A stretch of DNA of 64,000 nucleotides from Octopus sinensis (taxonomy: Eukaryota): assembly GCF_006345805.1 (NCBI RefSeq), contig NC_043024.1, positions 15,872,001 through 15,936,000 on the forward strand, read 5' to 3'. Under the pieces are notes generated by a model that ran no database searches, was not told the origin of the DNA, and was given only the letters and a program-made list of their open reading frames with translations. Numbering within the stretch: the stretch's first letter is position 1; each line of letters starts with the position of its first letter. A program made the position numbers and the translations under genes. Shown here piece after piece: positions 9,414 through 60,015 of the stretch.

Positions 9414-9563
9414 ATGGTTTTTGTTATAGATGGCACCCTAATGGCATGGGAGGAGATTAAACTCTATATTCCACTTGTCAAGAACCAAGCAAGAATGCAG
9501 TTTGTTCATCAATACAAGAAATATAAGGACCTGAAAAACTACCCATTTTATTGGGGTGATGAG
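9414..9563 (+). CDS. GCLC: GCLC-like copy 2, coding exon 1 (MVFVIDGTLMAWEEIKLYIPLVKNQARMQFVHQYKKYKDLKNYPFYWGDE); exon probably starts at 9345
   Basis: 50 codons ending in WGDE|GTAAGT, as in GCLC exon 1; in-frame TGA upstream at 9354-9356. Confidence 0.92.
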
Positions 9564-9609
9564 GTAAGTTTTTGACATACAGTTCTTTTCGGTATAAACT
9601 AACTCCTAT

Positions 9610-9915
9610 GATTTAAAAAAAAAACTTTTACCATGATGTTTGAAAGTAGAATAGAAGACGCACACGTGTTTAAGACGGAAAAATGCGCCAATCTGGCCAA
9701 CAGCTTGACGGAAGCAAACTTCCGGGTAAAGGTTTTCGCTAAAAAGGTCGAGGCCGTAGGTTTTGTGGGTAAATCTGCTTACGATCAGATGAAACAACTC
9801 TCAGTCTGTGGGAAGAATAGGATCAAAGCCCTAAAGGCAATATCAGAGACAGTGGAGACGTTTTCCAGCTGGATCTCGTCGAGGAGTAACAAAACCCTCT
9901 ATTCCGGTTGAAGGC
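9610..9915 (+). mobile_element. 3' fragment of a HERO/NeSL-like REL-endonuclease non-LTR retrotransposon
   Basis: ORF 9633-9911 (FESRIEDAHVFKTEKCANL...VEAVGFVGKS...KALKAISETVETFSSWI) follows the ELTVPWE..AHERK..KY..VEVGCRGF..SFWLW pattern of these elements. Confidence 0.7.
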
Positions 9916-10488
9916 AATATTTTTGTATTTTAATGCCAAGAGAAGTAACTTTGAATGAGCCATTGCGATAGCGCTGACGTTTCACCGCAACCATGACAAC
10001 CAACTTCATTTCTTCTTCAAGTATAAATTTGAAAACTGAATCAACGGGGAGGAGTACCAACTAGATGAAATCTCCAAGCGGTTTAAATGCATAAGTCTCC
10101 GATATCCAAGAGGCTAAAAAGTGTCGGCAGATGGACACCGAGGAGTCATGACCTGGATGCGACCGAGCTCGGCCCGGTCCGACCCTTTTAGAGTATAGGA
10201 AGAGACGAAACACTTTCAAGGGTGGGTGTTTCTTCTCTGAAGACCTTCTGCTTTCAGATCTCTTGAGAGTTTCTGACGGTGAAAAGCACGATAATTCACT
10301 TTTGAAGAAATGAATACGGGTAAAACACCAAGTTTCCAGATACCGATCGTCCAGAACATCTTATAATCAACACCAATTTACGAGCAGGAACTTCAAATGG
10401 CCGCGGCCGCCAGACGAGCTTACTGGGACCTTGCACAGACTAATAACTTAATAACAGTACAGTAGTAATAAACTTGTATCATTTATAC

Positions 10489-10736
10489 GAGTGGTTCTCA
10501 ACAGAGGGTCCATATGACCCTTGGTGGTGGGGGACATATAACATTTTGTTGTTAAAGCTCAGGCGCCATATATTCGTTATACTTCTATAATAAACAAAAT
10601 AGTTTAATTTTTTAAATACAATTCCTGATAATATATGATCATAAAAATATAATAGGATTTTTCAAACATCAAATAGCTAAGAGGGTCTACCCGAGGAATA
10701 TAGGGTTCGTAGGAAATAAATGGTTGCGAACCACCG
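10489..10736. mobile_element. hAT (Charlie-type) MITE; end fragments of the same type near 24614 and 60560
   Basis: TIRs gagtggttctcaac and gttgcgaaccaccg; 8 bp flanks atttatac and atttattt (6/8 match). Confidence 0.65.
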
Positions 10737-57870: not shown

Positions 57871-58063
57871 ATTGACTGTATATCATCATCATTATCATCA
57901 TCATCATCATCATTGCTATTATTATTATTATTATCATCATTATTATTATTATATGTTTGACGTTTGCCTTGTATTTGTAAAAGTTGATTCCAAGTCTCAC
58001 CCAGAGACCTCAAGAGACAAGTTAGAAGTTCATGTTATCGTTATCGTTATTATTATTATTATT

Positions 58064-59668
58064 CTATGTTTGACTTTTGCTTTATGTCTGTACAAGTTGG
58101 CTCCAAGTCTCACCCAGAGACCTCAAGAGACAACAGGTTGGAAGTTCTGTGCCATATATTTGGGGGTTTTTTTGGTTTTTTTGGTGTTGTACTAGTGAAT
58201 GTCTAATACATAAAAATAAAAGAAAAAAAGAAAAGAAAAGAAAAAAAATAAAAAGAAAAAAAGAAAACAAAATAAAATAAATAAATAAATAAATTTTTAA
58301 AAAGTTTGTTTTAAACCTTGGGATTACATAGAGAGTATTTTGCGTAGGATATGAGCAGTTCCCATGAGCACTATCTTTTGAATTTCTGCCATTTTGGGGT
58401 TTCCTGGTATCTGAGTTAGGTAACAATTAGTCCCTTTCGCTATCATTCCCAGGGCACCTATGACAACAGGTATTGTTTTAGTCTTCAGCTTCCACATTTT
58501 GCTGATTTCTATTTCAAGATCTTTATATTTGCTCAATTTTTGGTAGGTCTTGACAGATACGTTTATATCGATTGGGACAGTCATATCAATGAGGAGGCAT
58601 GTTCTTTGTCTGAAGTCTTTCAATAGGATGTCTGGCCTATTTGCATCTATCTTCCTGTCAGTTTGAATGGTGAAGTTCCAGAGGAGTGAGATGTGGTCAT
58701 TTTCAAGCACTGGGGGTGGTTTGTGTTCCCACCAGTTTTTTTCATGGGGCAAATCCAGGTTTTTGCAAATTACCCAGTCAATATATTGTGCAGCTCTATC
58801 ATGTCTACTGAGGTACTCTGTAGGCGCTAGAAGACTGCATTTGGAGACAACATGATCAATGGTTTCAATTTGTTGTCGGCATACACGACATGTTGGGCTA
58901 CTGCCGTTCTTTAATATGCTGGCCTGGTAGTTTCTTGTTGGTAGGCATTGATCTTGAGCTGCTATGATAAACCCCTCTGTTTCAGATTTTAAGCCAGAGG
59001 CCATTAGCCATTGATGGGTCAGGGCTTTGTCAATATCTGCATTATTCGCTCTCTTTGGGTATTTGCCATAGAGAGGTTTTTCTTGCCATTTATTATTCAG
59101 AATATCTAAGGCCGCAGTTTTGGCACGGGTTTTCATGCACTTAGCTTTTTCTGTGCTTGTTTCTTGTATGTCTATCTCTAATTCCGAAATTGGTTGTATT
59201 CGGAATTCACTTAGATATTCCTTTGCCTGTTTTGTGACTGAGTATGATGCTTTCTTGTTTTGATGTTTTGAGACAAGTTTTAACATCCAGTCCTCAGAGT
59301 TTTTCAGGTAGGTGTCTAGGCCAATTGTAGCAATCTTCATTGTTATTGCCAGTTGTAAAAGACCACGGCCTCCCTCTTTTCTTGGCAGATAGAGTCGTTC
59401 TGTATCTGCCTTAGGGTGGTGCATTCTATGCATTGTCAACAGTTTCCTTATTTTTCTGTCGAGCTGACATATTTCAGTAATTGACCAGTTAACAATATTG
59501 AAACTGTAAGTCACGACTGGTATAGCTAATGCATTGATCGCTTCGATCCTGTTTCTTGCATTCAGCTCTGTCTTGAGTTTATTTCTTGCATTCAGCTCTA
59601 TCTTGAGTTGTTTCTTGCATTCAGCTCTGTCTTGAGTTGTTTCTTGCATTCAGCTCTGTCTTGAGTTT
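58064..59668 (-). mobile_element. 5'-truncated R4/Dong-like REL retrotransposon with an open 441 aa C-terminal ORF
   Basis: ORF 58324-59649: HPKADTERLYLPRKEGGRGL, CRVC...H...C, RHD, NRPDIL...LID...KLSKYKDL; flanked by (TTA)n. Confidence 0.93.
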
Positions 59669-59944
59669 ATTACTATTATTATTATTATTGTTTTAGTCTT
59701 TAGTTTATTATTATTATTATTATTATTATTATTATTATTGAGTGAGAGAGCAGTGCATGCCACCAAAGTGACTCTGAGGTAAAATATACGAAGCCCAGTA
59801 TACCCATCATGATTACTCGTCTGATAAGCGTACACCAGGCACATGCATCACATTATTATTGTTGTTGTTGTTGTTGTTATTATTATCATTATTATTGTTC
59901 TTATTATTATCCTTATTATCGTTGTTGTTATTGCGATCAATTAG

Positions 59945-60015
59945 ACTCTGCTGATTGTGAACCAACTGATGATATTTGCACATTGATGACTATAAATGAA
60001 ATCATGAATGGAAAG
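59945..60015 (+). CDS. GCLC: GCLC-like copy 2, coding exon 14 (SADCEPTDDICTLMTINEIMNGK), paralog of 440-507; the remaining two exons are not seen in the window
   Basis: Clear nucleotide similarity to 440-507, including the flanking tcaattag and gtaaaaaatatt; phase 1 fits exon 13. Confidence 0.9.

Follow-up and report, generated by a model that had tools for sequence, protein, structure and literature searches.

The question raised by a stretch of 64,000 nucleotides of the Octopus sinensis genome (RefSeq assembly GCF_006345805.1, contig NC_043024.1, forward-strand positions 15,872,001–15,936,000; G000:C28:15872001-15936000, called the window throughout) is whether the gene that it carries, related to the catalytic subunit of glutamate–cysteine ligase (GCL) and hereafter named gene B, still encodes a ligase and, if so, of what kind. 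GCLC, the gene for this subunit, is usually present in one highly conserved copy and is limiting for the synthesis of glutathione. In octopods, the canonical GCLC is kept, and beside it there is a family of at least seven copies in which the metal core is retained, residues fixed from fungi to mammals are rewritten, and selection apparently continues to act. For the product of gene B, the chances seem about even that it is a constrained ATP-dependent gamma-glutamyl (carboxylate-amine) ligase with an altered acceptor, altered regulation, or both. This function is proposed because the metal core has been retained and the substrate-side residues have been replaced.

Gene model and active-site residues of gene B

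Gene B lies on the + strand, and its exons 1–14 (window positions 9414-60015) total 1539 nt, or 513 codons, with zero stops. In the window introns, AG was found at 14/14 acceptors and GT at 14/14 donors. A human GCLC sequence served as the lead of the exon search, solely for locating exons, and the boundaries were set by a junction search requiring AG/GT and a consistent frame. An earlier sequence-only reading of the window had described an intact GCLC paralog of 14 exons and 513 stop-free codons with consistent phases, and this count was reproduced exactly, all junctions being GT-AG. The extent of 9414-60015 that it gave to the gene proved too short. Gene B is incomplete in the window, as exons 15 and 16 fall 1.9–2.7 kb beyond the window end, and the complete gene has 16 exons and encodes 606 aa. 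The description as intact holds within the window; outside it, the donor of the last intron is AT, not GT, in this assembly. Neither stops nor frameshifts occur across the 606 codons, in O. sinensis or in O. vulgaris, and a retro-copy is ruled out by the 15 introns. The product is letter-for-letter identical to RefSeq XP_036370512.1 (P0001), which is annotated as 'glutamate--cysteine ligase catalytic subunit-like [Octopus sinensis]'. The exons are as follows (residues in human numbering).

9414..9563, + strand: exon 1, from the ATG, ends in WGDE (D49, E50); the spliced product is P0001
20306..20412, + strand: exon 2, starts with IEY (E52)
26071..26178, + strand: exon 3, PEY...MEGKS; E96 and E103 kept, T105K, P106S
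29242..29307, + strand: exon 4
30767..30883, + strand: exon 5, RLGRPNF...FPLF
31817..31875, + strand: exon 6
32545..32762, + strand: exon 7, MDTKLFGLGCCSLQVTFQ; M245L, C249S, Q251 kept
35736..35852, + strand: exon 8, DCRW; R296 kept
38279..38417, + strand: exon 9, KTRFD; Y329F
40468..40580, + strand: exon 10, YVAQLLVRDP (H370Y, H373Q, F375L), ...DHIQ
44941..45027, + strand: exon 11, TIIGSNWHSLKLKLPDEKSGWKIEFRTME, the remodelled loop; W406, K412, E425 and R427 kept
48848..48952, + strand: exon 12
51829..51910, + strand: exon 13
59945..60015, + strand: exon 14, the last within the window
65866-65980 (window-equivalent), + strand: exon 15, beyond the window
66521-66687 (window-equivalent), + strand: exon 16, beyond the window, includes the stop

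Domain analysis revealed a match of the gene B product to Pfam GCS (PF03074; 455 bits; E = 2.4e-136; cut-off 25). An AlphaFold2 model built from a 59-sequence alignment (pLDDT 88, pTM 0.91) has yeast GCL (3ig5) as its top PDB match in Foldseek (E = 1.8e-48; TM 0.88), and phmmer comparison of B with 3ig5 gave 9.8e-89. Weaker structural matches (TM 0.2–0.45) included YbdK, plant and bacterial GCL, PafA/Dop, glutamine synthetases (GS), 1-naphthylamine GS and gamma-glutamylmethylamide synthetase (GMAS). The earlier statement that members of this fold are able to take other amines is in line with the matches of the model to YbdK, GMAS and 1-naphthylamine GS. Gene B shares with canonical eukaryotic GCLC/Gsh1 (human GCLC, yeast GCL 3IG5) the PF03074 domain, the fold (TM 0.88) and 16 coding exons, but it is a paralog, not an ortholog, is about 40 aa shorter (606 vs 649) and is a member of a tandemly expanded family with seven or more copies.

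In yeast GCL, the Mg2+ ligands are E50, E52, E96, E103 and E470 (PMC5613772, Table 3), glutamate is contacted by Y362, E52 and R472, the cysteine moiety by E96 and W445, and ADP by D49 and K451, while C264 and C266 are termed active-site residues (PMC5613772). Yeast numbering was taken from a HMMER alignment to 3ig5, in which the yeast/human equivalents are C266/C249, R313/R296, Y362/Y329, W445/W406, E470/E425 and R472/R427. Gene B keeps D49, E50, E52, E96, E103, Q251, R296, W406, K412, E425 and R427, and so the retention of the acidic and Gln metal ligands, the DCRW and EFR arginines and the NW tryptophan, as read from the letters alone, is upheld. All metal-binding Glu and Asp residues together with Q251, K412, E425 and R427 are kept in every full-length paralog, Argonauta included, and the residues of the three-Mg2+ site (E50, E52, E96, E103, E425 and D49) are all present in B and in every full-length paralog. 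Core residues have been lost in other copies: W406 in A, and W406, R296 and R328 in E.

The motifs listed in the sequence-only reading (WGDE-IEY, PEY, MEG, LQV, EFR, DCRW, NW, MVFV, EGKS, FPLF, MDTKLFGLG, CSLQ, TRFD, IQTIIGS, LKLKL and GWKIE) were all found where it had placed them, and the canonical forms that it had given were confirmed in the octopus protein P0011 and the primate protein P0034. Its remark on CSLQ holds insofar as B has Ser in place of the Cys that immediately precedes LQ (human C249, yeast C266); the sequence is GLGCCSLQ, however, and two Cys still stand before this Ser. That the changed motifs line the ligand sites applies to yeast Y362, C266, the neighbours of W445/K451, and R468 (PMC5613772), but for MGLL and HPRF no role in a pocket is documented.

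The paralogs were also compared with 135 non-paralog GCLs from animals, fungi and others. On the glutamate side, R296 and R427 are kept in B, and Y329 is Phe in B and in 10/14 paralogs vs Tyr in 133/135 other GCLs. The acceptor (cysteine) side of B retains W406 but is no longer in the canonical state, with 6/10 residues of the HFENIQSTNW loop replaced and C249 changed to Ser. The invariance of these positions in the other GCLs is high: 135/135 for E399, Q402 and S403, 133/135 for F398 and T404, and 132/135 for C249. In total, gene B differs at 14 positions that are at least 130/135 invariant (T105, P106, M245, C249, Y329, H370, H373, F375, F398, E399, Q402, S403, R410 and R423), as well as at 55–56 of the 183 columns that are invariant across 18 bilaterian canonical GCLCs. 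The possibility that its substitutions are common variants of ordinary mollusc GCLC was rejected, given the invariance of these positions.

Relative to canonical GCLC, the product of gene B carries T105K, P106S, M245L, C249S, Y329F, H370Y and R423K, as well as HIQTIIGS in place of HFENIQST and KLKLP in place of RFKPP, the latter with a two-residue deletion. Eight changes are fixed to one new residue in all paralogs (A19I, L78P, C273T, V304C, H370Y, F375L, F411L and R423K). The remodelled segment, HIQ-x-II-G/A-SNWH..KLKLPD..S-GWKIEFRTMEL with its two-residue deletion, is near-identical from Octopus to Argonauta. C553, which we take to be the residue implicated in the GCLC–GCLM intersubunit disulfide, has been replaced in each of the 14 paralogs (by Pro in B, by P, R or L across the set), whereas Cys is found in 128/135 other GCLs.

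Origin and constraint of the octopod family

The sequence-only reading had treated gene B as a lone paralog; its paralogy was confirmed, but it is one of at least seven copies and the second of four in tandem. In a 260-kb stitched region around the window (G000:C28:15826001-16086000), four GCLC-like genes were found. The first three (A, B and C) lie on the + strand and the fourth (D) on the − strand, and all of them comprise 16 exons with a frame of 606–607 aa. The model of copy C equals RefSeq P0004. Genome-wide, exon 7 was found at seven paralog loci (four of them the tandem copies, two others on C28 near 2.10 Mb and 12.20 Mb, and one on the unplaced contig C6395) and at one more distant locus on contig C4; small scaffolds carry further GCLC-like exon fragments, as does C28 at 2.30 Mb and 12.15 Mb. 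The paralogs outside the 260-kb cluster and the canonical gene were studied as database proteins. The C4 locus, on a second contig of chromosome scale, encodes the canonical O. sinensis GCLC (P0011, 649 aa), which is about 53–54% identical to gene B. Thus, gene B is a GCLC paralog and not the sole GCLC of the genome, which is ruled out by P0011, and the O. sinensis family comprises at least seven GCLC-derived paralog loci, with the canonical housekeeping gene retained elsewhere.

A maximum-likelihood tree of 32 sequences, including 14 octopod paralogs from O. sinensis, O. vulgaris, O. bimaculoides and Argonauta hians, joins all 14 paralogs in a single clade (support 100/100), which has the canonical GCLC of O. 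sinensis as its sister (100/99) and is nested inside molluscs. Gene B falls outside the canonical orthologues, represented in O. sinensis by P0011, and within this separate, long-stemmed clade, whose stem branch measures 0.89 substitutions/site vs 0.13 for canonical octopus GCLC. A long-branch artefact as the cause of the placement beside the octopus canonical gene was rejected, as attraction would pull the clade rootward and the support is 100/99. The clade contains six groups (A–F), each joining O. sinensis/vulgaris and O. bimaculoides sequences where available, with Argonauta inside the clade. Because the tree places Argonauta within the clade and the six groups span Octopus species, the founding duplication is dated, on these sequences, to the cephalopod lineage prior to the Argonauta–Octopus split, and the expansion of the family to a time before the split of O. 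vulgaris and O. bimaculoides. When the derived remodelled segment (residues 375–470) was searched for in 5.8 billion proteins, it was found in four octopod species only, squid and cuttlefish proteomes being apparently outside this collection. A literature search for octopus or cephalopod GCLC expansion, accession QHX41528 and octopus gamma-glutamylcysteine found nothing relevant; the octopod GCLC-like family is apparently annotated by similarity alone and undescribed in the literature searched.

Pairwise ratios of nonsynonymous to synonymous substitution rates (dN/dS, omega) among copies A–D are 0.24–0.32, at dS of 0.32–0.60. The O. vulgaris chromosome (L031, OX597840.1) carries an ortholog of B with all 16 exons and canonical splice sites, and the comparison of gene B with this ortholog revealed 8 synonymous and 3 nonsynonymous differences, an omega of about 0.10 and no stops. 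The deficit of nonsynonymous differences is significant (one-sided binomial P = 0.0009, given an assumed neutral nonsynonymous fraction of 0.76). Judged by these codon comparisons, the paralog family is under purifying selection, not in neutral decay, although constraint is less tight than would be expected of a core enzyme. Of the derived states of gene B at canonical-invariant columns, 67% are common to Argonauta; because so many states are shared and the remodelled segment is near-identical from Octopus to Argonauta, the derived states have been held by selection.

Putative function and alternative explanations

Canonical GCLC was duplicated in the cephalopod or octopod lineage, and fast change on the stem was followed by purifying selection. 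According to the mechanism proposed here, the B protein would retain the ATP/Mg2+-dependent activation of the glutamate gamma-carboxyl, as suggested by the kept residues. The replaced residues would lie around the glutamate alpha-carboxylate contact (Y329F) and the acceptor-side loop (HFENIQSTNW to HIQTIIGSNW, RFKPP to KLKLP), accompanied by T105K, C249S, R423K and H370Y and by the loss of C553. The acceptor preference, the regulation (feedback by glutathione (GSH), pairing with GCLM), or both, would then differ from those of GCL, and gene B would not serve as a second housekeeping GCL. The interpretation in the sequence-only reading, of retained catalysis with a shifted substrate specificity, is thereby supported in part. 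Differences in contact residues among the copies, which include Tyr or Phe at position 329, suggest diversification within the family, and a loss of activity is possible in copies A and E.

Several observations weigh against an altered ligase, and they are given here together with the alternatives on which they bear. It is conceivable, albeit rather unlikely, that the copies are tissue- or stage-specific isozymes that still make gamma-glutamylcysteine and differ in kinetics or regulation only, e.g., by the absence of GCLM pairing or by weaker GSH feedback. Such isozymes would fit the purifying selection on the frame, the loss of C553 in all paralogs (its role in the GCLM disulfide being presumed) and the retention in B of every documented metal ligand and of R296, W406, K412 and R427. 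They would also fit the conservative nature of several replacements, both the Tyr-to-Phe and Arg-to-Lys changes (Y329F, R423K and R410K) and C249S. The replacement of C249, which the sequence-only reading had counted as a sign of shifted specificity, is not diagnostic by itself, since an active trypanosomatid gamma-glutamylcysteine synthetase, that of Leishmania, lacks the equivalent Cys and has Ala at this position (PMC5613772), and because of this enzyme no single residue change can be regarded as decisive. On the other hand, human C249A strongly lowers activity (PMC6532282), and H370L is a human mutation that causes GCL deficiency (PMC11444706). Mere isozymes would also leave unexplained why 14 positions of at least 130/135 invariance have been replaced together, including 6/10 residues of the loop leading to the cysteine-contacting Trp, and why copies A and E lack W406 and copy E also lacks R296 and R328. 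A change in acceptor or regulation, unlike a mere isozyme, predicts that glutamate- and acceptor-side residues which do not vary between yeast and human are replaced jointly and that C553 is lost as well.

It is unlikely, but has to be weighed, that the family is non-catalytic, made up of pseudoenzymes with a binding or structural role, or that it is slowly decaying, with O. sinensis B already impaired by its splice-donor change. The long stem branch and the raised omega point in this direction, as values of 0.24–0.32 are high for an essential enzyme, as do the contact residues lost in copies A and E. A further point against an altered ligase is the PF03074 score of B, which is lower than that of the canonical octopus protein (455 vs 592 bits). 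Columns that were once invariant are now variable among the copies: mean pairwise identity among the paralogs is 0.57 at canonical-invariant columns changed in B vs 0.67 at ordinary variable columns, a comparison biased by the choice of B-differing columns. Judged from these columns, relaxation is involved, and much of the change has the look of relaxed constraint as opposed to a newly fixed pocket. At the level of the gene, the intron-15 donor of B (window-equivalent 65981, G000:C28:15937981) reads GCAG/ATAAGA in the O. sinensis assembly, and RefSeq splices this intron as AT-AG, the other 14/15 introns being GT-AG; the AT could be a true G-to-A change in this individual or lineage, be it a polymorphism or a real splice defect, or else a mistake of the assembly. 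In the assembled copy D, one nucleotide is missing where exon 13 starts. Searches for transcript-derived copies (Logan, ENA) with the full-length protein, the remodelled segment and a fragment of the C terminus found none, but there are none for the canonical octopus gene either, which makes this result uninformative.

Decay is opposed by the 606 codons of B that are free of stops and frameshifts in two species, by the excess of synonymous over nonsynonymous differences (8 to 3) with an omega far below 1, and by the normal donor, GCAG/GTAAGA, which is present at the same site in paralogs A, C and D and in the O. vulgaris ortholog of B. A GenBank entry for O. vulgaris paralog F (QHX41528.1), which is outside RefSeq, UniProt-linked and possibly mRNA-derived, would also argue against it. 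A non-enzymatic role would not predict that none of the full-length paralogs has lost its metal-binding acidic residues; their retention in all copies over the Octopus–Argonauta span is what would be expected of an enzyme and not of a purely structural protein. Cephalopod S-crystallins are a gene family derived from glutathione S-transferase, whose members became structural lens proteins and lost the catalytic residues. The GCLC-like copies resemble them in that a gene for an enzyme of the glutathione pathway was expanded in tandem in cephalopods and then diverged fast, putatively with a change of role, but they differ in keeping the catalytic metal ligands.

With YbdK, GMAS, 1-naphthylamine GS and PafA, the product of gene B shares the superfold and, presumably, the ATP/Mg2+ acyl-phosphate chemistry. 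These enzymes demonstrate that new amine acceptors can arise by evolution within the fold. These YbdK/GMAS-type ligases are only 6–12% identical to B and belong to bacterial lineages that are not derived from eukaryotic GCLC, and no sequence signature ties the octopus paralogs to any particular acceptor of YbdK-type ligases. It is a doubtful, tentative extension of the proposal that the octopod family consists of gamma-glutamyl ligases acting on non-cysteine acceptors (e.g., biogenic amines or other amino compounds), with the acceptor differing by copy and lineage-specific gamma-glutamyl metabolites as products. To our knowledge, the enzyme of monoamine gamma-glutamyl conjugation has never been cloned, and, if this extension were true, a GCLC-derived ligase would be the first molecular candidate for conjugation of this type. 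The gamma-glutamyl conjugation of monoamines is established in gastropods and annelids (PMC6454038, PMC8155685). Biogenic amines as acceptors are disfavoured by the difference between gastropod and cephalopod monoamine catabolism (PMC6454038) and by the fact that, among the best matches, the gastropods of the sequence set have canonical GCLC only. If the copies are active, the family would represent a natural experiment on the re-engineering of GCL acceptor and regulatory sites and may point to unknown octopod gamma-glutamyl metabolites; if they are inactive, a core redox enzyme would have given rise to a new family of pseudoenzymes.

Tandem copies and intronic elements

The 5' part of the window contains the last three exons of the upstream sister paralog A, which had been overlooked in the sequence-only reading (440-4606):

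440..507, + strand: paralog A exon 14
3320..3437, + strand: paralog A exon 15
4440..4606, + strand: paralog A exon 16 with the stop codon

The first 13 exons of paralog A are located up to 40 kb upstream of the window; it has an open frame over all 606 aa and corresponds to P0009 of O. vulgaris. The exon-by-exon nucleotide identity among A–D is mosaic: most exons are 63–90% identical, and near-identical pairs were observed for exon 16 of A and B (99%), exons 15 and 16 of C and D (100% and 99%), exon 11 of B and C (98%) and exon 10 of B and D (97%). This pattern suggests gene conversion among the tandem copies. In copy D (G000:C28 about 16.03 Mb, − strand), exon 13 starts with GTGATGAAAAC, compared with GTTGATGAAAAC or its equivalent in A–C, and in this assembly the 1-nt deletion breaks the frame at a conserved junction; in O. 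vulgaris, the D protein (P0005) is normal there. In the deposited protein of the O. vulgaris ortholog of B (P0002), the N-terminus is wrong and exon 5 has been left out. The two misannotated exons are intact in O. vulgaris DNA (L031, OX597840.1:13392260-13456415), are bounded by GT-AG and are 100% and 98.9% identical to those of O. sinensis. A far more distant GCL-like match (34% identity, 278-aa open stretch, a few in-frame stops) was found on a small unplaced scaffold (G000:C9530:17322-18945, + strand) and could be a degenerate copy or foreign DNA.

A scan of the window for tRNAs and Rfam families found none. Introns 1, 2, 10 and 13 of gene B harbor long open frames at 11626-12687 (+), 41020-41784 (−), 22268-23326 (−), 21467-22093 (−) and 58324-59649 (−), with matches to endonuclease (PF03372), reverse transcriptase (PF00078) and zf-RVT (PF13966) domains; judged by these domains, they look like fragments of non-LTR (long terminal repeat), LINE-type (long interspersed nuclear element) retrotransposons. 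Intronic tandem repeats were observed at 53757-54994 (398-bp unit x3.1, 99% identity) and at 48156-48800 (300-bp unit x2.1), the latter ending about 50 bp before exon 12 of gene B. Further intronic tandem repeats at 61003-61787 consist of CT-rich units of 133–167 bp; they give rise to open frames at 60407-62310 that are about 500 aa long and spurious.

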